From IMG/VR virus record IMGVR_UViG_3300047157_000197, positions 211,971 to 275,970 of that record: 64,000 bases of DNA; one strand, written 5' to 3'. Positions 11,855-44,262 of the stretch are shown one piece after another. The position numbers and the translations under genes were made by a program. The notes beneath the pieces were generated by a model. The model ran no database searches, was not told where the DNA came from, and saw only the letters and a program-made list of their open reading frames with translations. Each line of letters begins with the position of its first letter. Position 1 is the first letter of the stretch.

Positions 11855-12574
11855 ATGAGAAATATATTTATTTTAATTTTATGTGTATTATTCACACAAA
11901 ATACTATTGCACAAACTGTTGGTAAAATCAAGGCAGAAACATATCAAGCTGAATTTGAAAAAAAGAAATCAATTGATGATGTATCTGATTACGATGGTCC
12001 ATATATTCCTATAGCTTTACTTAATATATCTGCTAGTGATGGGGTTTACGAAATGTGGCCTGAGTTAAAGGATGCTAGAGTAGGTTTAGGTGTAACAAAC
12101 ATGGTAATAGAGTACTTGGATTGGACAAACAGATTCGAGTTCGTAGAGGAGAAGTCAGAGATTAAGGATAGAATGAAAAATCAATGGGTTGCATCAAGAA
12201 AGGGTGTTTCTCAAAATGAAGTTTATGGAATGGGTAAAGTAATGTTGGCGAATTATTTCGTTACAATAGAGATTTACGATTTCTCAGTTTCAGAAGATGA
12301 GGTTTTATCTTTAAAAGATGGTTCTAAACAAACACAAACAACTCGTTTAGGGTTGCAAGTTCGTTTTACTAATGCCGAGAATGGTACTTACTTTGTAGGT
12401 TCTGGTCTAGGTGAAGCAAATACAGTTAAGACTCAAGAGGGTTTGCTGGGATTAGATTTGGAGGAAATAAACTTCAGACAATCAGCAATTGGGGTAACTA
12501 CCAGAAAAGCATTAGAAACGGCTTCAGCAAGAATAGTAGCAAGAATGATTAGAAAAAAAATATTTCCAAACTAA
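11855..12574 (+). CDS. CsgG/HfaB family protein (curli secretion-channel-like)
   Basis: Signal peptide; GVTNMVIEYL..TNRFEFVEE, ANYFVTIEIYDF, LGLQVRFTNAENG match the CsgG fold pattern. Confidence 0.7.
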   Translation: MRNIFILILCVLFTQNTIAQTVGKIKAETYQAEFEKKKSIDDVSDYDGPYIPIALLNISASDGVYEMWPELKDARVGLGVTNMVIEYLDWTNRFEFVEEKSEIKDRMKNQWVASRKGVSQNEVYGMGKVMLANYFVTIEIYDFSVSEDEVLSLKDGSKQTQTTRLGLQVRFTNAENGTYFVGSGLGEANTVKTQEGLLGLDLEEINFRQSAIGVTTRKALETASARIVARMIRKKIFPN

Positions 12575-12577
12575 TGA

Positions 12578-14353
12578 ATGAGAAAACTACTATCGATACT
12601 TGCATTTTGGTTCATAACTAATCTTAGTTATGGACAAACATTCACACAGACATTTGTAGATAGATGTACTGGTGAAGTACAAGTTGTTACCGCTAATTTT
12701 ACAAGTGGTTCTGCTATCGTATCCTTTTACAACGAAGCTAAATTATTCACATACACACAATATACTAATGGTGAACTCCAACAATGGTTAGTTCAGAAAT
12801 ATGCATGGTGGGCTGCACTATCCCCATGTTCATCTGCGAGTAACGCAACCAACAACGCTAATAATACTGCAAACAACGCAACCAATAATACCAATTCAGG
12901 TTCAAGTGGTTCTAGTGGTGGTGGAGATAGTGGTTCAAGTGGTTCATCAGGTGGTAGTGGAGATAGTGGTGGTGGAAGTGGAGATTCAGGCGGTGGAGGT
13001 TCTGATGGTGGAAGTGGAGATTCTGGTGGCGGTGGTTCTGATGGCTCTGATGGTGGTGGTGGAGATTCTGATGGAGGAGGAGGCGATTCCGATGGCGGGG
13101 GTGGTGATTCCGATGGTGGCGGTGATTCCGATGGTGGAGATAGTGATGGTGGGTCTGGTGATTCCGATTCTGATGGTGGAGATAGTGATGGTGGAGATAG
13201 TGATTCTGATTCTGATGGTGGAGATAGTGATTCCGATTCCGATAGTGATTCTGATTCCGATAGTGATTCTGATTCCGATAGTGATTCTGATTCTGACTCT
13301 GATGGCGATAGTGATGATGATTCTGATTCTGACTCTGATGGCGATAGTGATGATGATTCTGATGGGGATTCTGATGATGATTCCGATGGAGATAGTGATG
13401 ATGAATCTGATGATGATTCCGATAGTGATGAAGATTCTGATGAATCTGATGAAGATAGTGAAGAAAGTGATGAGGAAGATAGTGAAGAAGAATCCGATGA
13501 AGAAGAAAAGGAAGAGGAAGAAGAAAGTGATGAAGAAGAGGAAGAAGAAGAAAAAGAGGAAGAAGAGGAAGAAGACGATGAAGAAGAAGATGAGGAAGAA
13601 GAAGATGAGGAAGATGAGGAAGATGAGGAAGACGAAAAAGATGAAGAAGATGAGGAAGAAGAAGAAGAAAAGAAAAAGAAATTTATGCCAATAGTATTGA
13701 AGGCAGATGTAATGTCAATGCAAGCTCTAACAAGAGAATACAACCAAGTTCTTGCAATTGGAGCATCACAAGCATCAATCTATGGTGATATAACAAATAC
13801 AGCAACTTTACAAGTATATGATAACTTAAAACAAGTTGGGTTATCATTGGGTAGAAGTAAAGTAAGTTTGAATGAAAATTATCAAGTAACTTGGGTAGAT
13901 GGAGCAAACGTATCTTATATGAGAAATTATCAGATGAACTCAACTACATTATCTCTCAGTAGAATGAAACCAATGGGTAAGTATGGAACTGTTGGATTGG
14001 GTGTTAGTTATTCATTTATGTTTGGTAAAGATGCTCTTGGAAATACAATGCCAAAAATGGGTACTATGGGATATAATGTTCTTTATACAAATATGGTAAA
14101 AATAAATGATAGAATAATGTACACACCAGCATTGATTGGTGCACAAAACCCATTATCTTATACAGAAAAAGTTGAGGGGTTCGATGCCTTTTCATCAACA
14201 TCAAAAGATTTTATAGGAATCCTTGCAAATTCCTTTACAATACAATTAACAAAAAGTTTTTCGTTTAATGCAGGTTGGACGATAATTTATAGTAGTAATG
14301 AGTTTGTTCCAATTATGAATTCGTTTATGATAGGAGCAAAGTTACCCTTTTAA
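12578..14353 (+). CDS. exported protein: N-terminal domain, Gly/Ser/Asp then Asp/Glu stalk, C-terminal beta-barrel-like domain
   Basis: Signal peptide; about 260 aa of low complexity; about 220 aa of amphipathic strands ending in terminal Phe (GAKLPF). Confidence 0.65.
   Translation: MRKLLSILAFWFITNLSYGQTFTQTFVDRCTGEVQVVTANFTSGSAIVSFYNEAKLFTYTQYTNGELQQWLVQKYAWWAALSPCSSASNATNNANNTANNATNNTNSGSSGSSGGGDSGSSGSSGGSGDSGGGSGDSGGGGSDGGSGDSGGGGSDGSDGGGGDSDGGGGDSDGGGGDSDGGGDSDGGDSDGGSGDSDSDGGDSDGGDSDSDSDGGDSDSDSDSDSDSDSDSDSDSDSDSDSDGDSDDDSDSDSDGDSDDDSDGDSDDDSDGDSDDESDDDSDSDEDSDESDEDSEESDEEDSEEESDEEEKEEEEESDEEEEEEEKEEEEEEDDEEEDEEEEDEEDEEDEEDEKDEEDEEEEEEKKKKFMPIVLKADVMSMQALTREYNQVLAIGASQASIYGDITNTATLQVYDNLKQVGLSLGRSKVSLNENYQVTWVDGANVSYMRNYQMNSTTLSLSRMKPMGKYGTVGLGVSYSFMFGKDALGNTMPKMGTMGYNVLYTNMVKINDRIMYTPALIGAQNPLSYTEKVEGFDAFSSTSKDFIGILANSFTIQLTKSFSFNAGWTIIYSSNEFVPIMNSFMIGAKLPF
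12896..13670 (+). repeat. coding low-complexity repeat: (GGGDSD)n, (SD)n, poly-D/E
   Basis: gattct/gatagt/gattcc hexamers then gaagaa/gatgag runs. Confidence 0.95.
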
Positions 14354-25236: not shown

Positions 25237-26007
25237 TTGGATAGATTTAAAAAAATACCACCTCTTGATATGAGTGAGTGGTTTGTTACAGAAAAAGAAA
25301 AGGACACCTTTCATCCTAATGATTGGAATATGCCAGTGCCTTGGATATCCTCATTTATTTTTACACATATAAAATCTGAATTTTGGGGTTATGGAAACGA
25401 CCAAGAATGGGATTATAAGCATAGACCAAAAGTTTTACAAATTGGTTGTGCTCAAGGATGGGATGCCATTGAAAATGCCAAAATACTTAAATTGCCTTCA
25501 ATAAATGGAGAGCTTCATATTATTGACTGGTTCAAAGGTAATTTAACTGTTGATACAGAAGAAGAATGGTATTATAATGAAAATAACCCACCAGAATGGA
25601 AATCCCACTTATGGAGTGAGGCAAAAAAATTCAAAGTAGATGATATTATAACAGTATTTGAAGGCGATTCAAGAAAAATGATTCATAATGTTATGGATAA
25701 TTGGTATGATATTATTTTTATTGACGGTGGTCATGAATATGATATCGTAAAATCAGATGTTGAAAATGGTTATAGAAAATTAAAAAAAGGTGGTATTATG
25801 GTTTTTGATGATTTTTCAGGAGATGAAACTACCTATGATGAATTAAATATCAAAGATGCATCTGAAGAAATGTTAGAAAAAGATACTTGGGAATTTGAAT
25901 CACATGGTTTGGTTCATGTTGGTGTTATAAAAGCAGTACATGAATTTTTAAAAGGAGATTATATTTCTGTTCCATGTCATCATAAATGCTATCACATTAA
26001 AAAATAA
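25237..26007 (+). CDS. class I SAM methyltransferase (Methyltransf_24-like)
   Basis: QIGCAQG, GDS, IFIDGGHEY, GGIMVFDD. Confidence 0.85.
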   Translation: MDRFKKIPPLDMSEWFVTEKEKDTFHPNDWNMPVPWISSFIFTHIKSEFWGYGNDQEWDYKHRPKVLQIGCAQGWDAIENAKILKLPSINGELHIIDWFKGNLTVDTEEEWYYNENNPPEWKSHLWSEAKKFKVDDIITVFEGDSRKMIHNVMDNWYDIIFIDGGHEYDIVKSDVENGYRKLKKGGIMVFDDFSGDETTYDELNIKDASEEMLEKDTWEFESHGLVHVGVIKAVHEFLKGDYISVPCHHKCYHIKK

Positions 26008-26016
26008 AATAAAGTT

Positions 26017-26490
26017 ATGATATATTGGTTCACAGGACAACCTGCAGCAGGAAAAACTATTTTAGGTAAAAAATTAATTGAGTTTCTTAAAACAGAAAAG
26101 AGAAATTGGAGAAGAACAGTCTTTCATTTAGATGGAGATGATTTAAGAGAACTAACTGTTAATAAAGATTATACCCCAAAGGGTAGAGAAATCAATATAA
26201 GAAATGCTCAGATGATTACAGAATTTCTTCATAAGAATGGGTGTGATGTAGTTGTTTCACTTGTAGCACCTCCAAGATGGTTACGAGAAGAATTCAAAGA
26301 AAGAATAGGTTTAGAAAACTTTCAAGAATTTTATGTACATTGTTCAGACCCTCGTGAAAGAGACCACTTTCATAGTAAGAATTACGAAGCACCTCAAGAT
26401 AACTTCATCGATGTTGATACAACAAAACATTCACCCGAAAAATCATTTTCAAAGATTATAAATACGCTGAAAAAGTTAAATAGATTATAA
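26017..26490 (+). CDS. cysC: adenylylsulfate (APS) kinase
   Basis: WFTGQPAAGKT, LDGDDLR, YEAP. Confidence 0.8.
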   Translation: MIYWFTGQPAAGKTILGKKLIEFLKTEKRNWRRTVFHLDGDDLRELTVNKDYTPKGREINIRNAQMITEFLHKNGCDVVVSLVAPPRWLREEFKERIGLENFQEFYVHCSDPRERDHFHSKNYEAPQDNFIDVDTTKHSPEKSFSKIINTLKKLNRL

Positions 26491-27533
26491 TGATTGATAA
26501 AAAAGAATATATCTGTTCAATGCCGTTTCAATATACAGAGGTATTTGATGACAGACAATATCTTTGTTGTCCCTCTTGGTTAGATGTGGATGTGTGGGAT
26601 GGAAAATCAATAAAATCTAGTTTTAATAGTGATAAGTCAAAAGAAGTTAGAGAATCTATTTTAGATGGTTCTTACAAATATTGCAATGAAACACAATGTC
26701 CATATTTATCAGGTCTAAAAAATAATAACTTATCAAAGAAATTTATAAAAAAAGATAAAAAAATTATAAACAACCTAAGAAGTAACGTTGAAATAAAAAC
26801 AGTTAATTTTTGTTTTGATAGAAGTTGTAATTTTCAATGTCCATCTTGTAGAAATGAATTAATAAACTACTATGGAAAAGATAGAGAACAAGTTGAAGTA
26901 AAACTTAAAGAAATTACAGATGAGATATCATCAACTGTAAAAATATTATATCTCACAGGAACTGCAGACCCATTTTACTCTAAATCATTTAGAGAGTTTT
27001 TAGAAAAATTAGATTCTACCAAATTTAAAAAATTAGAATCAATTCATTTACATACTAATGGAAGTTTATGGAATGAAAAAATGTGGAATAGATTAAGTGC
27101 AATACATCCTTATGTAAAAACTTGTGAAATATCAATAGATGCTGGAACAAAAAAAACCTATGAAACTAAAACAAGAATCGGTGGTAAGTGGGATGTGTTG
27201 TTAGAAAATTTAAAGTTTATCACCACAATAGATACTATACAATTCTTTAGTTTTTCATTTGTAGTACAAGACAGTAATTTTAGAGAAATGAAACTATTCT
27301 ATGATATAATAACTAATTGTATGAAAGGAAGTAAATCTAAATTTGATGTATTTTATAATTCAATAACAAATTGGGGTACTTATAGTGAAGAAGAATATAA
27401 TGAAAAAAATGTTACAAATTCAAATCATAAAGACCATAGCGAGTTTTTGGAAGTATTAAAAACAATGAAAGATTTACCTTTCTTTACAAATAATTTTAAT
27501 CACTTATATGAAAAAACAATAAGTTTAATATAA
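26490..27533 (+). CDS. radical SAM enzyme with N-terminal SPASM/twitch-like Cys cluster
   Basis: CNFQCPSC; N-terminal C..P, CC, C...CP. Confidence 0.85.
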   Translation: MIDKKEYICSMPFQYTEVFDDRQYLCCPSWLDVDVWDGKSIKSSFNSDKSKEVRESILDGSYKYCNETQCPYLSGLKNNNLSKKFIKKDKKIINNLRSNVEIKTVNFCFDRSCNFQCPSCRNELINYYGKDREQVEVKLKEITDEISSTVKILYLTGTADPFYSKSFREFLEKLDSTKFKKLESIHLHTNGSLWNEKMWNRLSAIHPYVKTCEISIDAGTKKTYETKTRIGGKWDVLLENLKFITTIDTIQFFSFSFVVQDSNFREMKLFYDIITNCMKGSKSKFDVFYNSITNWGTYSEEEYNEKNVTNSNHKDHSEFLEVLKTMKDLPFFTNNFNHLYEKTISLI

Positions 27534-27934
27534 TGGCAAATATAAAAACAAAAGCAGATAAAGAATCTTCCTCATCAGAAGTAAAGTATTCATTCTTTGC
27601 AGGTAGATGGCAACCACTTCACAAGGGGCATCTATGGTTAATTAATGAAAGATTAAAAGAAGGATATAAAGTATGGTTAGGTATCAGAGATGTAGAACCA
27701 GATGAAAAGAATCCTTGGACTGCAGAAGAAATTCTAAAAATGGTTCATGAAGGTGAGTTAAAAGAACTCATCTTAGAGGGTAAGGTAATTGCAACCATTA
27801 TACCTGATATCGAATCTATCAACTATGGTAGAGGAGTAGGATATGATATCATAGAGCACGTACCACCAAAAGAGATTGGGGATATTTCAGCAACATCTAT
27901 TCGTAATCAAATGAAAAAAGATGGTAAGCTATGA
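27533..27934 (+). CDS. HIGH-family nucleotidyltransferase
   Basis: GRWQPLHKGH, ISATSIR. Confidence 0.8.
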   Translation: MANIKTKADKESSSSEVKYSFFAGRWQPLHKGHLWLINERLKEGYKVWLGIRDVEPDEKNPWTAEEILKMVHEGELKELILEGKVIATIIPDIESINYGRGVGYDIIEHVPPKEIGDISATSIRNQMKKDGKL

Positions 27935-28419
27935 TTTTGTTTCAAGAAAAACTTATAGATGATATAGAAATAAAATACCTTCTTAATCTTTGGGATACTA
28001 ATTTAGTTCAAGATAATACTAAATTTTTAGATGAATATAAAGCACTAGCAATGGAATGGGTTGATGTAATTAAAAATAAGTTAGATATAAGTAGCTTGCA
28101 CAACGGAGGGTTTCATAATAAAAATTTTGAAAAAATAAGAATACAACATTATCACGAATCCATTGGTAATATAGAAACATACCATGGTCATGTCAATATT
28201 CATAATTATATTATATTTTTGAATGATGATTTTAAAGGTGGCGAATTAGAATTTGAAAATGGAATAATCATTAAACCATCAAAGGGAAGTTTAGTATATT
28301 TCAATAATAATGAAAGACATAGAGTTCTACCTTGTATCGGAAGTAGATATGTATTTACTGCATTAGGAAATACAGAAGCAAATATAGAATTTAAATCTAA
28401 AGAAAAAAGTATTATATAA
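27931..28419 (+). CDS. 2OG-Fe(II) oxygenase-like protein
   Basis: FLNDDFKGGEL, H..., GSRY; first ligand motif atypical (HxH/HxN). Confidence 0.65.
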   Translation: MILFQEKLIDDIEIKYLLNLWDTNLVQDNTKFLDEYKALAMEWVDVIKNKLDISSLHNGGFHNKNFEKIRIQHYHESIGNIETYHGHVNIHNYIIFLNDDFKGGELEFENGIIIKPSKGSLVYFNNNERHRVLPCIGSRYVFTALGNTEANIEFKSKEKSII

Positions 28420-28420
28420 T

Positions 28421-28615
28421 ATGGCATCAATAAAAGAAACTTTTATCAAAACTATTATTTGGAGAGTAATTGCTACTTCAATAACATTTTTAGTTAGTTG
28501 GGTTATAAGCGGTAACTTAGAGTTTGGATTAATGATAGGTGGTATAGATACAATAATAAAAACAATCGGGTATTTTACATATGAAAGATTATGGAATACT
28601 AAAAAAACAAAATAA
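28421..28615 (+). CDS. DUF2061-like small membrane protein
   Basis: KTIIWR...YERLW. Confidence 0.75.
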   Translation: MASIKETFIKTIIWRVIATSITFLVSWVISGNLEFGLMIGGIDTIIKTIGYFTYERLWNTKKTK

Positions 28616-28616
28616 A

Positions 28617-29645
28617 ATGATAAAACCAAATGTAAAAAATGAATGGGGTGATTTAAAAGAAATCATTGTAGGAAGTGCAATAAATGCACAAGTACCAACT
28701 GTTGGGGATAAATGTTTACATAATATTGATTATGCACACCTATCTGATGAAGAATTTAAAAACAGACCAAGTGGATTATATCCTCAAAAACTGATAGATG
28801 AAACTGAAGAAGATTTAGATGGAATTTCAGACCAACTTAGAGAACTTGGAGTAAAGGTTCACAGACCATTAGAAAGAGATTTTTCACAACCTATAAAAAC
28901 AGATAATTGGGAAGTTGATGGTTATTATAACTATTGCCCAAGAGATTCTATGTTAGTTATCAACGATAAAGTTATTGCAACACCAATGACTCTTAGACAT
29001 AGAAGTAATGAAGCAGAAACTTGTAAACCATTATTTGACCCAACACATTGGGTAGATGCTCCAAAACCAAAATTATTAGATTCAATCTATCAAAGAGAAG
29101 ATTTATCTATTCCAACGTTACTTGATGGTGAACCTGTTTTTGATGCAGCAAATGTTATTAAACATAATAATGATTTACTATATTTAGTTTCTAATACAGG
29201 TAATAAGACTGGTGCAGAGTGGTTAGAAAGATATTGTAAAGAAAACTTTGGTGAAGAATATAATGTACATTTAGCACAAGGTGTTTATGCATACATTCAT
29301 ATTGATACAACTTTTGTATTTGTAGGAGAAGGTAAGGTACTTTTAAATCCAACAAGAGTTAATGAATTCAATATACCAGAATTTTTAAAACCTTTTGATA
29401 AGATATGGGCACCCGAACCATTTCCTACTCAAGTACTTGATAATTGGTGTCCTGCTTCACCATGGTTGGGAATGAATATTTTACCAATCAATGATAAGTT
29501 AATAATGGTTGAAGAACACCAAACTCTACTAATGAAAGAATTAAAAAGATTTGGAATAGATACAATACCTGTAAGAATGAGACATGCTAGAACTTTTAGT
29601 GGTGGACCTCATTGTGTAACCTTAGATGTAGTTAGAGGTGAGTAA
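28617..29645 (+). CDS. amidinotransferase (glycine/inosamine-phosphate amidinotransferase family)
   Basis: NEW..LKEIIVG, CPRD, FDAA, HID, GGPHC; start 28617. Confidence 0.88.
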   Translation: MIKPNVKNEWGDLKEIIVGSAINAQVPTVGDKCLHNIDYAHLSDEEFKNRPSGLYPQKLIDETEEDLDGISDQLRELGVKVHRPLERDFSQPIKTDNWEVDGYYNYCPRDSMLVINDKVIATPMTLRHRSNEAETCKPLFDPTHWVDAPKPKLLDSIYQREDLSIPTLLDGEPVFDAANVIKHNNDLLYLVSNTGNKTGAEWLERYCKENFGEEYNVHLAQGVYAYIHIDTTFVFVGEGKVLLNPTRVNEFNIPEFLKPFDKIWAPEPFPTQVLDNWCPASPWLGMNILPINDKLIMVEEHQTLLMKELKRFGIDTIPVRMRHARTFSGGPHCVTLDVVRGE

Positions 29646-30723
29646 GCGTATATTAGATTTTCATCACCAAGCTAATAGATTATTTGGAAGATTTCTTGAT
29701 ATCAACGATTATAGAGATTCAGCCAATGGTGTTTATGATGCTATAATTGCACATAGACAAATTGAAGAAGATGGTGAAATTGAAGAACTTATTAAATATT
29801 GTAAAAAAACTACAAGAGTAATAGTAGATATAACAACCGAATCTGGTCAAATAGAACTTTTTATTGATAGATTTAATAAAATTATAAATAAACATCCATA
29901 TAAATTCATTTTAATTTCAGATGTACCTATTAATAAAGTAGTAAATTGTAAAGTGATAGATGATTATTCACTTGCATTTACATCTCATTTAAATGATTCA
30001 ATGGTTGGTAGAGTATATCATCATCCAACAGGTGCAAAATTGCAACATGGACTTGATAGTTATAATGGTTCTTTAAGAATACAAAGATTATGGTTAAATT
30101 ACTTTTTTATTACAAAATTCAGAAGAGATGTATTACCATTGAACGTTGAGTTTAATCATTATGTAAATTTAGGCGAAGGTCCACAATTTTATCAAGAACA
30201 ATTTGAAAATTTACTTAAAGAATTACCCACAACTGAAAGAAATGAAATACTTCATAATAAACAATATATAAACCCACCTGGAAAAGATATTGATATTGCA
30301 CATTTCAATGATTTAAAACACCATTGTAACACCGTAAACGTTGTAAGTGAAAACACAATAGGTAATGATATGAATAAAAACGATGATTCCTTTCATATAA
30401 CTTTCACAGAAAAAACAATTAAACCATTTGTAAGAGGACAGATACCGTTAATACATAGTTATGTAGGATTGCAATCTAAATTAAGAGAATTAGGATTTGA
30501 TTTATACGATGAATTTGTAAACCATTCATATGAAAATGAATCAGATTCAGTAAAAAGACTTGAAATGATTGTAGATGAGGGTAAACGATTAATGTACTTA
30601 GATACTGAAAATTATTTAAGAGAAAATCAAAGTAGAGTTTACAAGAATAAAAAATTATGTGAGTATTTGGTATGGCAAGGTAAAACCATGGTACATGATA
30701 TAATAGATAATATTAATATTTAA
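29638..30723 (+). CDS. GT10-like (fucosyltransferase-like) protein
   Basis: NVVSE, FTEKTIKPF, LRELGF, HSYE. Confidence 0.5.
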   Translation: MSKRILDFHHQANRLFGRFLDINDYRDSANGVYDAIIAHRQIEEDGEIEELIKYCKKTTRVIVDITTESGQIELFIDRFNKIINKHPYKFILISDVPINKVVNCKVIDDYSLAFTSHLNDSMVGRVYHHPTGAKLQHGLDSYNGSLRIQRLWLNYFFITKFRRDVLPLNVEFNHYVNLGEGPQFYQEQFENLLKELPTTERNEILHNKQYINPPGKDIDIAHFNDLKHHCNTVNVVSENTIGNDMNKNDDSFHITFTEKTIKPFVRGQIPLIHSYVGLQSKLRELGFDLYDEFVNHSYENESDSVKRLEMIVDEGKRLMYLDTENYLRENQSRVYKNKKLCEYLVWQGKTMVHDIIDNINI

Positions 30724-38168: not shown

Positions 38169-39392
38169 ATGAATGAAATGAATGAATTTAAAGTTGGATA
38201 TGTTTCCACAGAAGTGTACAAAGTTGAACAGTTTGGTAATACCTGGAAACTGATAGATTCACAAGGTACTAAAGTTGGTACTCTTGGAGCAACAACATTA
38301 ACAAGAAAAACAGCATTTAAAGAAGGTAAGGCACTTCAAGCATACATCAATAAGAATGGTAAGAAAACTTACAGAAAAGTTGATATGAATGTTTATAACT
38401 CCTTAGTTATTCCTATGAATACAGACCAAGGTGGTGTTCAGTTTGAAGATAAATCAGACCACACTGCAATAAAAGATTTTATCCACCAAGGTTCGGTATC
38501 TCTAAAACCAACTGAATTGGTTATGGAAGAATTGAAATGGAAATATCTTATCAGAAGTGCTGTGAGAGCTAAAAATATTATGATGACTGGACCGAGTGGT
38601 TGTGGTAAAACTATGGCTTCCAAAGCTTTAGTGAACGCACTCGATAGACCAGATTTCTATTTCAACCTTGGGGCAACTCAAGACCCGAGAGCTACCTTAA
38701 TTGGTAACACTCACTTCGATAAACAAAAAGGAACATACTTTTCAGAATCCGCTTTTGTTACGGCAATCAAAACTCCAAACGCAGTTATTCTGTTAGATGA
38801 GTTATCGAGAGCTCATCCAGATGCGTGGAACATCTTAATGACTGTACTTGACCAAGGACAGAGATACTTGAGATTAGATGAGGCTGATGGTTCACCAATT
38901 GTGAATGTGGCTGAAGGTGTTACTTTCATCGCTACCGCTAACATCGGTAATGAATACACATCAACAAGAGTTATGGATAGAGCAATCTTAGATAGATTTG
39001 TTACTATTGAAATGGATGTTCTTGATGATGTTAAAGAATTAGGATTATTAAAGTTTATGTTTCCTGAAGTTAAGGAATATGATTTGAAAGCAATCGCAGA
39101 AATCGCTCATCACACTAGAACTCAATCAATGAATGAGAATGGTAAGTTAACTTCAATGGTTTCCACCAGAGCATCTGTTGAGATGGCTGGGTTAATCTAC
39201 GATGGTTTCGAACTTAACGAAGCAGCTGAGATTTCAATCTATCCTTTCTTTTCTCAAGATGGTGGTGTTGATTCGGAAAGAACTTACATCAAACAATTGG
39301 TTCAGAAATACCAAATGGATGAAAATGGTGAACCTCTATTCAAAGAAGTAGATGACACCGAAAGTAATGAGGATGATATCCCTCAGTTTTAA
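38169..39392 (+). CDS. MoxR/CbbQ/CobS-like AAA+ ATPase
   Basis: GPSGCGKT, ILLDE, ATAN, DRAILDRF, STR. Confidence 0.9.
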   Translation: MNEMNEFKVGYVSTEVYKVEQFGNTWKLIDSQGTKVGTLGATTLTRKTAFKEGKALQAYINKNGKKTYRKVDMNVYNSLVIPMNTDQGGVQFEDKSDHTAIKDFIHQGSVSLKPTELVMEELKWKYLIRSAVRAKNIMMTGPSGCGKTMASKALVNALDRPDFYFNLGATQDPRATLIGNTHFDKQKGTYFSESAFVTAIKTPNAVILLDELSRAHPDAWNILMTVLDQGQRYLRLDEADGSPIVNVAEGVTFIATANIGNEYTSTRVMDRAILDRFVTIEMDVLDDVKELGLLKFMFPEVKEYDLKAIAEIAHHTRTQSMNENGKLTSMVSTRASVEMAGLIYDGFELNEAAEISIYPFFSQDGGVDSERTYIKQLVQKYQMDENGEPLFKEVDDTESNEDDIPQF

Positions 39393-39413
39393 GGTTATCA
39401 ATTATTTACAAAT

Positions 39414-39442
39414 GAATAAGGGGGATTAATTTCCCTCTATTC
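39414..39442 (+). terminator. hairpin after the AAA gene
   Basis: gaataaggggg...ccctctattc imperfect inverted repeat; no clear U-tract. Confidence 0.35.
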
Positions 39443-39460
39443 TAAATAGTATAAAGTTAC

Positions 39461-40811
39461 ATGAAATTATTATTAGGAGATAGTGTAGATAAATTAAAAG
39501 AGTTAGATGATAACTCTATTGATTCAATCGTTACAGACCCACCTTATGGTTTATCCTTTATGGGTAAAAAATGGGATTATGATGTTCCTTCACAAGAAAT
39601 ATTTGAGGAATGTTTAAGAGTATTAAAACCAGGTGGTTATTTACTTTCATTCGCAGGTTCACGAACTTATCACAGAATGGCAGTTAGAGTAGAAGATGCT
39701 GGGTTTGAGATAAGAGACCAAATAATGTGGATATATGGAAGTGGTTTTCCAAAATCTATGAACATAGGAAAAGCTATGGATAAAGTACAAGGTAATGAAA
39801 GAGAGGTAATTGGTAAAAAGGGAGGAAAAATAGATTTTAGTAAAACTAAAAAAGGCGATACATCTTTTTATGAGACTGCTTGGGATAATAAAGATTATGT
39901 GGAGTTAGAAATAACCAAAGGAAACTCTGAATGGGAAGGTTGGGGAACTGCTCTTAAACCTGCTCACGAACCTATTGTAATGGCAAGAAAACCTTTAAGT
40001 GAAAAAACAGTAGTTAATAATGTTTTAGAATGGGGAACAGGTGGAATTAATATTGATGAAAGTAGAATAGGAACAACAACAAAAACAAATGCTGGAAAAG
40101 CAAATAAAGAAAATAACAGAATAGCTGGCTAATGGTGGATATGTAAATGATGTCTCATCACAAGAACACAATTACGGCAGATTTCCTGCAAATATTATAT
40201 TAGATAAAGAAGCAGGTAGAATCCTTGATGAACAAACAGGTGAATTATCAACTGTGGGTAGTCCTAAAAAGATTGATAATAGTAAAACATCCATTTTTGG
40301 AGCAGGTGTACCTGGATTTCAAATGTATGGTGATAAAGGTGGAGCATCTCGTTTCTTCTATTGTCCAAAAACTTCTAAAACTGATAGGAATGAAGGATTG
40401 GATGAGTTTGAGGATAAATACTATGCCGCAGGTAATCAAGCAAAAGCAGAACTAAAACGAGGTAATGTTGAGTTTAATTCCAATAAAGGTAAAGGTAAAG
40501 ATGAACGACACAATCACAATCAAGTTGGTGTAAGTAAAAACAATCACCCAACTGTTAAACCTACTGATTTGATGTTATACTTAATCAGATTAATAACACC
40601 AAAAGGTGGAACTACTTTAGACCCTTTTATGGGTAGTGGTTCAACTGGTAAAGCAGCAGTTAGAGGTGGATTTGATTTTGTTGGTATAGAAAGAGAAAAA
40701 GAGTATATGGAAATTGCAGAAGCAAGAATCCAATATGAAAAAGATAATCCTTATAGTGAAGAAAAGGAAGAACGAATACAAATAAATAAAAATGCAAATA
40801 AATTTTTCTAA
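39461..40811 (+). CDS. N6A/N4C DNA methyltransferase (one-base insertion near 40130)
   Basis: DPPY, HPTVKP, DPFMGSGSTG; removing one base restores GRFPANIILD and joins both ORFs. Confidence 0.85.
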
Positions 40812-41581: not shown

Positions 41582-42085
41582 ATGAGAATTCTAATTATAT
41601 CACTTCCAAGGACAGGGTCTAATTCTTTAATGAAGAAATATTCTTCTAAATATAAATTAGATATGTACGGAGAACCATTTAATGAACGTCATCTACTACC
41701 AAGTGATTGGATAACATCTGATAATGTTATAGTTACAACCAAGTTGACACAATGTCCAGAAAATGTTAAAAATAGTGTTAAATATTGGTATGAACAATCA
41801 AAATCATTTGACAAAGTTATTTTATTATCAAGAAAAGATTTGTATGATTGTGCAAAGAGTTTTTCTTTTTTACTTGATAAACGTAATGAGGGATATAAAT
41901 ACAATGCTTCTTATGTTTGGGAAGAAACTCCAAGTTTAAATAATATTTATAAAAACTTACAATCAGAACATAAAAAATTAGAATTAATTTCAGAAAAATT
42001 AAATATTTCTGTAATATATTATGAAGATATTTTTGATATTAATTCAAAAGATAGGTTAAGAAAAAATAATAAAGAGATATTATAA
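41582..42085 (+). CDS. sulfotransferase-like protein
   Basis: SLPRTGS (5'-PSB loop), EPF, LSR, YED. Confidence 0.65.
   Translation: MRILIISLPRTGSNSLMKKYSSKYKLDMYGEPFNERHLLPSDWITSDNVIVTTKLTQCPENVKNSVKYWYEQSKSFDKVILLSRKDLYDCAKSFSFLLDKRNEGYKYNASYVWEETPSLNNIYKNLQSEHKKLELISEKLNISVIYYEDIFDINSKDRLRKNNKEIL

Positions 42086-42633: not shown

Positions 42634-44262
<1,629 letters not shown>

Follow-up and report, generated by a model that had tools for sequence, protein, structure and literature searches.

Sulfate activation is thought to rest on two enzyme types, Sat and CysDN. In the bifunctional PAPS synthases, such as metazoan PAPSS1/2 and bacterial Sat-CysC fusions including that of Aquifex (2gks), an APS kinase is fused or coupled to a nucleotidyltransferase of the HIGH superfamily, both domain orders occur in nature, and sulfotransferases are the consumers. 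CysDN, CysNC and NodPQ occupy the same place in the pathway next to cysC, but have an unrelated fold (a PAPS-reductase-like subunit plus a GTPase) and are coupled to GTP. Two-enzyme routes to other 3'-phospho-nucleoside-diphospho donors seem to follow a similar logic of a nucleotidyltransferase followed by a 3'-kinase. PPAT with dephospho-CoA kinase and Campylobacter Cj1416/Cj1415 are likely examples, with phosphopantetheine or phosphoramidate as the acceptors and without a link to sulfotransferases, CysQ or DUF2061. Here we analyzed a window of 64,000 nucleotides (positions 211,971 to 275,970) of the marine phage record IMGVR_UViG_3300047157_000197 (275,970 bp). It carries an APS-kinase-like gene, a 133-residue nucleotidyltransferase (NTase) gene and a DUF2061 gene, and we propose that the small NTase is probably a minimal ATP sulfurylase. 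This interpretation is supported by comparative genomics and not by biochemistry.

A sequence-only reading had noted these three genes in one cluster, a sulfotransferase-like gene at 41582 and no cysD, cysN or sat in the window, and had inferred that the NTase is a stripped-down ATP sulfurylase supplying sulfation. To confirm this observation, we searched the translated genes (genetic code 11 only) against profile libraries. All named genes are present on the + strand. The absence of cysD, cysN and sat holds for the window and also for the whole virus record, in which no PF01747 and no PF01507 match was found. However, three further genes had not been mentioned. A radical SAM gene lies between the kinase and the NTase, a 2OG-Fe(II) oxygenase gene lies between the NTase and DUF2061, and a StrB1-like amidinotransferase gene overlaps the end of DUF2061. 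All are joined by overlapping or abutting start and stop codons.

The first gene (26017-26490, 157 aa) matched Pfam APS_kinase (PF01583) with 53 bits against a cut-off of 21.1, and its best PDB sequence hits are APS kinases. The P-loop, DGD-x-x-R and NIR motifs are kept. However, it scored only 61 bits against the NCBIfam apsK equivalog, whose cut-off is 138.7, and a 21-residue deletion was found in its lid segment (KGLYKKAR...FTGID in the intact form). This deletion is shared with other phage kinases that lie next to sulfotransferases, and the protein is 48-50% identical to the short kinases that sit directly behind Sulfotransfer_3 genes in two other viral loci.

The NTase (27533-27934, 133 aa; hereafter P0002) matched only Pfam CTP_transf_like (PF01467), with 26.8 bits against a cut-off of 21. 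It carries a GRWQPLHKGH motif, which includes H30-x-G-H33, and an ISATSIR motif at residues 118-124. H30, H33, S119 and R124 are invariant in 53 sequences of the family, which is large and unnamed; P0002 has 7274 close relatives. To place the protein among known enzymes, we predicted its structure with AlphaFold (pLDDT 89) and compared folds by structural alignment. The nearest relatives by sequence and fold are archaeal-type NMNAT (NadM, MJ0541), with 31% identity and Z 9.6 to 1f9a, and PPAT, with Z 9.5. The fold of the ATP sulfurylase catalytic domain is shared with 1v47_B at Z 7.4 (rmsd 3.7, 115 residues aligned) and with PAPSS1 and yeast ATPS at Z 6.0, which is a resemblance at the superfamily level only. 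Thus, in contrast to the sequence-only reading, the enzyme is not a trimmed Sat. Its core is about 115 residues, against about 390 for Sat, and it lacks a PF01747 match, a PUA-like domain and the QxRNPxHxxH and GRDHAG motifs that appear to be typical of that family.

Compared with archaeal-type NMNAT, P0002 shares the GRxQPxHxGH, NPF(T/S) and (S/G)(A/G)TxIR motifs, but has family-specific VRD, PD-x-KNP and GR-x-VGY motifs. An alignment with five archaeal-type NMNATs revealed a 25-residue deletion after the IPDIE strand, a segment that probably forms the NMN pocket in NMNAT. Against the NMNAT profiles TIGR01527 and NF002243, P0002 scored 28.6 bits against a cut-off of 181 and 39 bits against 127, and orthologues scored at most 52 bits. 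In a phylogenetic tree the family is separated from NMNAT by a branch with SH-aLRT 98. P0002 groups (SH-aLRT 99) with the NTases of two viral loci that sit in cassettes of sulfotransferase, short kinase, NTase and DUF2061, and the three core genes of this phage are 40-62% identical to those of sulfotransferase cassettes.

DUF2061 (28421-28615, 64 aa) matched PF09834 with 73.3 bits against 23.1 over the full profile length, and is a two-helix membrane protein. As the sequence-only reading had stated, DUF2061 lies in cys loci. In Flavobacteriales it is mostly found directly upstream of cysC-cysD.

To determine whether the three genes form a recurrent module, we examined the neighborhoods of NTase homologues. 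In 52 cellular loci, the NTase is fused to an APS kinase in 27 and adjacent in 22, whereas 3 show neither. In 80 IMG/VR loci, 10 are fused and 61 adjacent, DUF2061 is adjacent or fused to the module in 59, and a Sulfotransfer_3-type gene lies within 4 kb in 25. Fusions to the APS-kinase domain occur in both orders in many 50%-identity cluster representatives. The NTase is fused once to DUF2061, and DUF2061 is fused to the APS kinase in Chitinophagaceae. It is interesting to note that the NTase also occurs fused to a methyltransferase and to DUF6717, so the family may take other acceptors. The partner kinases in cells passed the apsK equivalog cut-off, with 285, 178, 160 and 148 bits. Sulfotransferases lie directly adjacent in two loci and recur in further ones, a CysQ-like Inositol_P phosphatase is present in 12 loci, and glycosyltransferases, epimerases and a flippase also recur. 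A complex prediction for the phage kinase and NTase gave no verdict (score 0.00) and is not evidence either way.

We then asked whether genomes with the module contain a known source of APS. Of 35 such genomes, only 1 has Sat and 6 have a strong CysD-like hit. The other 28 have neither, and in 24 the kinase of the module is the only APS kinase. The seven genomes with Sat or CysD include the Reyranella and Rhodospirillaceae isolates and a Scalindua MAG, so the module is not strictly an alternative; in addition, most genomes are MAGs or SAGs. In 151 Flavobacteriales, 72 genomes have an APS kinase. Of those, 67 have CysD and no small NTase, and the other 5 lack CysD and Sat and are exactly the 5 with the NTase beside the kinase. 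These five loci are chromosomal, with GcvH, TonB, MetK and AhcY as neighbors, although the five genomes are probably one clade and not independent events. The same test was uninformative in Halobacteria and Chitinophagales, in which the true module occurs in only 4 of 121 and 1 of 121 sampled genomes, respectively.

To identify a possible user of PAPS, we searched the phage genome for sulfotransferases. No Sulfotransfer_1/3 gene was found (PF13469 and PF00685 are absent), nor was the recurrent 291-aa cassette protein. The gene at 41582-42085 (+) has no Pfam hit at E 0.01, but it carries a PRTGS loop and an LLSRKD...S motif, and an Atlas lead pointed to PF09037. The top four Foldseek chains for its AlphaFold model (pLDDT 92) include three of the Stf0 sulfotransferase 1tex (E 3e-5, TMq 0.59), but P-loop kinases follow closely. 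Homologues of this candidate Stf0-like sulfotransferase co-occur with the small NTase in 13 of 16 large viral contigs, 0-8 kb apart.

Each testable genomic prediction of the sequence-only inference came out as expected, and with fairly good confidence we favor a portable PAPS-synthesis module. The NTase would be an NMNAT-derived HIGH-motif enzyme that has lost the NMN-binding segment, and is inferred to transfer AMP from ATP onto sulfate, giving APS and PPi. The APS-kinase-like protein would then phosphorylate the 3'-OH to give PAPS, which would pull the unfavorable first step forward. DUF2061 is inferred either to bring in sulfate or to tether the enzymes to the membrane. PAPS would then be used by a sulfotransferase, here most likely the candidate Stf0-like protein at 41582, to sulfate a glycan or small-molecule acceptor.

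Other readings are unlikely but deserve consideration. The NTase could activate another small acceptor, or use another nucleotide, with the kinase 3'-phosphorylating that product to give a PAPS analogue, as appears to occur in the Campylobacter O-methyl phosphoramidate pathway, where a CysC homologue would phosphorylate CDP-amidate. The short-lid phage kinases below the apsK cut-off, the fusions to a methyltransferase and DUF6717, and nearest relatives that use phosphate-ester acceptors are consistent with this. However, many partner kinases are canonical APS kinases by the curated cut-off, the neighbors are PAPS-type sulfotransferases and CysQ-like PAP phosphatases, DUF2061 also accompanies canonical cysC-cysD, and short-lid kinases themselves sit directly behind sulfotransferase genes. 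It is less likely still that the NTase is only an accessory partner of APS kinase, regulatory or for nucleotide recycling, with APS coming from the host or an unrecognized enzyme. Seven module genomes do have Sat or CysD, and the unknown host of the phage could supply APS, but both catalytic motifs are invariant across the family, 28 of 35 genomes have no known APS source, and the distribution in Flavobacteriales is perfectly complementary to CysD.

We also doubt that in this phage the kinase and NTase phosphorylate and nucleotidylate an amino-sugar or aminocyclitol, without involvement of sulfate, for modification by the neighboring enzymes. StrB1-type enzymes probably act on phosphorylated aminocyclitols and the genes are translationally coupled in one block, yet the amidinotransferase was found in only 1 of 35 module-bearing phage records, the radical SAM and oxygenase genes are not recurrent neighbors, and the core genes resemble those of sulfotransferase cassettes. 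An ordinary NMN adenylyltransferase for NAD salvage is the least likely. Although the best NCBIfam and PDB hits are archaeal NMNAT and NadM, and GRxQPxHxGH is of the NMNAT type, the low profile scores, the deleted segment and the well-supported branch argue against it. Furthermore, no NAD genes lie nearby, in contrast to the linkage to APS kinase, and the phage has a separate NMNAT-like domain elsewhere.

More broadly, it is somewhat more likely than not that a third, minimal class of ATP sulfurylase exists, forming with APS kinase and DUF2061 a self-contained, horizontally mobile cassette. The cassette would replace CysDN or Sat in marine Flavobacteriales, Chitinophagaceae, Omnitrophota, Planctomycetota, CPR bacteria, DPANN and other archaea, and many uncultured phages would use it to sulfate glycans, possibly of the host surface, or metabolites during infection. 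DUF2061 would then be the sulfate-uptake or membrane-tethering component of sulfate activation in general. We found no description of the family, the cassette or a function for DUF2061 in the literature searched, which was incomplete, so that prior work cannot be excluded. Such an enzyme, small enough for phages and the smallest cellular genomes, would explain orphan APS kinases and sulfotransferases in genomes that seem unable to make APS, would change how sulfur metabolism is scored in metagenomes, and would offer a compact PAPS-regeneration part for biocatalysis.

The radical SAM, 2OG oxygenase and amidinotransferase genes of the cluster do not belong to the conserved module and, with a methyltransferase gene, may tailor the acceptor in this phage lineage. 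The radical SAM protein (26490-27533, +) matched Radical_SAM and Fer4_12 and, weakly, the twitch radical SAM family, and is not a recurrent neighbor in 80 viral loci. The 2OG-Fe(II) oxygenase (27931-28419, +) matched 2OG-FeII_Oxy_3 with 36 bits and phrog_61, and is likewise not recurrent, although related cassettes carry other oxygenases. The amidinotransferase (28581-29645, +) matched inosamine-phosphate amidinotransferase StrB1 (1bwd) over residues 17-352 with E 4e-84 by phmmer, and AGAT, HsvA and SxtG at about 1e-40. A class I SAM methyltransferase (25237-26007, +; Methyltransf_24, 57 bits) is an occasional neighbor, with homologues next to the module in 4 other viral loci. The radical SAM, oxygenase and methyltransferase proteins, as well as a 361-aa protein, have no solved relatives by sequence. 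Contigs of four RNA-library runs cover the stretch, although DNA carry-over is not excluded. Among cultured phages, only a divergent fused form was found, in Xylella, Xanthomonas, Stenotrophomonas and Clavibacter phages.

The window is the last 64 kb of a 275,970-bp IMG/VR virus record, which CheckV rates as complete. GC content is about 30% and almost all genes are on the + strand. A local GC peak (0.39 against about 0.30) with strong GC skew lies at 12001-14000, and long ORFs overlap on both strands inside the 591-aa gene at 12578-14353. Near-identical contigs of about 276 kb occur in seawater assemblies. One ENA contig of 525,285 bp, roughly twice the genome length, carries the same locus and is possibly a concatemer assembly of the ~276-kb genome. 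The stretch 25237-30723 was present at 96-99% of its sampled words in at least 14 seawater DNA runs from 2018 to 2025. This is an abundant marine jumbo phage with an unknown host, and one nearby gene resembles genes of Pelagibacter and Methylophilales myophages. Contigs assembled from four seawater metatranscriptome runs lie on the kinase, radical SAM, nucleotidyltransferase and amidinotransferase genes described below at 95-100% identity. This is weak support only for expression, since contigs cannot show strand or expression level and DNA carry-over is not excluded.

The genes in 25237-30723 form one block joined by overlapping or abutting stops and starts. They encode a Methyltransf_24 methyltransferase, an APS-kinase-like protein (26017-26490), a radical SAM protein (26490-27533), a 133-aa nucleotidyltransferase (NTase; 27533-27934), a 2OG-Fe(II) oxygenase (27931-28419), DUF2061 (28421-28615), a 354-aa protein (28581-29645) and a 361-aa protein with no recognisable relatives. 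The 354-aa protein was barely recognised by Pfam, which gave only a weak C-terminal ADI hit. However, it is a clear amidinotransferase, matching StrB1 (1bwd) at E 4e-84, and its gene is translationally coupled to DUF2061. The kinase keeps the P-loop, the DGD-x-x-R motif and the NIR motif, but it lacks 21 residues of the APS-kinase lid and scores 61 bits against the apsK equivalog cut-off of 138.7. The NTase has the HxGH and ISATxIR motifs. Neither Sat (PF01747) nor the CysD/CysH fold (PF01507) occurs anywhere in the phage genome.

These results confirm the cluster noted in the sequence-only reading. Its inference, that the NTase is a stripped-down ATP sulfurylase supplying sulfation, is supported by several independent genomic lines of evidence, although it remains unproven biochemically. 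The enzyme is not a trimmed Sat. It is a reduced NMNAT-type transferase that appears to have taken over sulfate adenylylation. PAPS synthesis itself is a known system, but we found no description of this enzyme in NCBIfam, Pfam, PHROGs or the searchable literature.

To define the family of the NTase, we first used a word search, which found 7274 relatives. An exhaustive search of 50%-identity representatives found 1025, of which 388 had E of 1e-10 or better. Among the top 150 representatives, the domain is fused to an APS-kinase domain in both orders, once to DUF2061, and occasionally to a methyltransferase or to DUF6717. PHROG 10255 is a fusion with the APS-kinase domain: the phage's kinase matches its N-terminal part and the NTase its C-terminal part. 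It corresponds to the "kinase" of the Xylella phage Salvo group and of Stenotrophomonas phage DLP6.

To examine the linkage to APS kinase, we searched 52 bacterial and archaeal loci with home-built HMMs. The NTase is fused to the kinase in 27, directly adjacent in 22 and unlinked in 3. In four Chitinophagaceae genomes, a DUF2061::kinase fusion overlaps the NTase start. In the loci L052, L055 and L056 (Woesearchaeota, an unclassified archaeon and Methanosarcinales), an NTase::APS-kinase fusion is followed immediately by a second, stand-alone canonical APS kinase. One of the two kinase domains may be regulatory, as in fungal ATP sulfurylase. In 80 IMG/VR loci, 10 are fused and 61 adjacent. DUF2061 is adjacent or fused in 59, and a Sulfotransfer_3-type gene lies within 4 kb in 25. 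The recurrent order is sulfotransferase, kinase, NTase, DUF2061.

A quick maximum-likelihood tree separated the family from NMNAT outgroups (SH-aLRT 98), although the tree has few columns and is only a quick search. It placed the window's protein (SH-aLRT 99) with those of L183 and L185, two T4-like myophage contigs in which one or two Sulfotransfer_1/3 genes, a short kinase, the NTase and DUF2061 lie together. It is interesting to note that in two Pelagibacteraceae SAGs (L065, L072) and a Flavobacteriaceae MAG (L061), a divergent kinase and NTase pair is followed by a protein with a pyruvate-kinase barrel domain. The three NTases form one well-supported clade even though the bins belong to different phyla, which suggests transfer between lineages or mis-binning.

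We next analyzed the neighbours of the module, and the context is sulfation. A fusion with a full-length APS kinase (protein P0199) lies directly after a Sulfotransfer_3 gene in a glycosyltransferase cluster. A phage-like contig has the order sulfotransferase, APS kinase, an unknown gene, then NTase::DUF2061. When the neighbours of the cellular loci were clustered, the commonest families were a CysQ-like Inositol_P phosphatase (12 loci by HMM), three sulfotransferase clusters (17 loci), epimerases and methyltransferases. CysQ-type enzymes remove PAP, the by-product of PAPS-dependent transfer. In the viral loci, the recurrent neighbours include GT8, GT2 and GDP-mannose-dehydratase-like genes. 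A protein of about 291-344 aa with no Pfam family also recurs beside the sulfotransferase in phage cassettes (20 of 80 loci), for example in the loci L134 (4792-5676), L185 (5693-6568) and L016 (4667-5701), and is duplicated in L183 (1758-2717 and 3586-4461). It may be a second transferase or an enzyme that makes the acceptor. The kinases linked to the NTase in cells pass NCBI's apsK equivalog threshold.

To determine whether these genomes have another source of APS, we searched 35 genomes holding the module. One has Sat, and that one is the Nitrospiraceae genome in which the NTase is not next to a kinase. Six have strong CysD-like hits and 28 have neither. All 35 have an APS kinase, and in 24 the module's kinase is the only one. 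In an even sample of 151 Flavobacteriales, 72 have an APS kinase. Of these, 67 have CysD and no small NTase. The remaining five have no CysD and no Sat over the cut-off, and are exactly the five with the NTase beside the kinase. Conditional on having the kinase, this split has a probability of 1 in 13,991,544. However, the five are probably one clade, so the independent weight is much less. The fact that 67 of 67 other kinase-bearing genomes, many of them MAGs, show CysD argues that incompleteness rarely hides it. The five loci are chromosomal, with glycine-cleavage H protein, TonB, SAM synthetase, SAH hydrolase and a polysaccharide flippase as neighbours. In marine Flavobacteriales (L024 8518-11744 and its relatives L023, L028, L029 and L030), the module is followed by a DeoC/LacD-family aldolase, aldehyde dehydrogenase genes, a CysQ-like phosphatase and a polysaccharide flippase, which could point to an organosulfur or sulfated-sugar pathway.

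In the same Flavobacteriales sample, DUF2061 occurs in 43 genomes. It mostly lies directly upstream of cysC-cysD or beside cysD (for example at 2427-4298 of contig C8 in genome G210), and is often a tandem duplication within one ORF. In the five NTase-bearing Flavobacteriales, it lies on a different contig from the module. DUF2061 is thus a general companion of sulfate activation, whichever sulfurylase is used, and sulfate uptake or membrane tethering are the obvious possible roles.

The AlphaFold model of the NTase has pLDDT 89. It matches archaeal NMNAT (Z 9.6), PPAT (Z 9.5) and NadM best, and matches ATP sulfurylase catalytic domains at Z 6.0-7.4 over 112-115 residues. Compared with five archaeal-type NMNATs, the family lacks 25 residues directly after the IPDIE strand and carries its own invariant motifs, VRD, PD-x-KNP and GR-x-VGY. 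In NMNAT structures, the missing segment presumably contributes the nicotinamide-ribose pocket. We infer that a small acceptor such as sulfate therefore fits, and that the two family-specific arginines are candidates for binding the anion. The phage has four further HIGH-motif nucleotidyltransferase domains, at 2200-2634 of the window and at 39186-39659, 85371-85784 and 98306-103513 of G000, the phage genome. Two are TagD/RfaE-like small proteins with a GNFD..HPGY motif, one is an HldC-like protein with GGFDPVHKGH, and one is an NMNAT-like domain at the N-terminus of a 1735-aa protein.

To identify the consumer of PAPS in this phage, we searched for a Sulfotransfer_1/3 gene and for a homologue of the recurrent 291-aa cassette protein. 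Neither is present. However, the 167-aa protein at 41582 has a PRTGS loop without a Walker lysine and an RKD...S motif, and the protein atlas gave a lead to PF09037. Its model (pLDDT 92) has three of its top four Foldseek hits on chains of the Stf0 sulfotransferase, with P-loop kinases close behind. Its family is found with the small NTase in 13 of 16 large viral contigs, 48 bp to about 8 kb apart. The three contigs without it are 38-55% complete. We take it as the probable sulfotransferase, at moderate confidence.

The radical SAM, 2OG oxygenase, amidinotransferase and 361-aa genes are not recurrent partners of the module, and the amidinotransferase was found in only 1 of 35 module-bearing phages. 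Related cassettes do carry other oxygenases, namely three 2OG-FeII_Oxy_5 genes and a FA_hydroxylase. We speculate that these genes may prepare the acceptor, for example by hydroxylation before O-sulfation.

Elsewhere in the window, two adjacent ORFs (39461-40132 and 40254-40811) match the N-terminal part (profile positions 1-93) and the C-terminal part (150-220) of the N6_N4 DNA methylase profile. This is either a split gene or a gene interrupted by an insertion. The phage also encodes a GroEL-type chaperonin (42646-44262; Cpn60_TCP1, 247 bits) and a MoxR/CbbQ-like AAA_5 ATPase (38169-39392).
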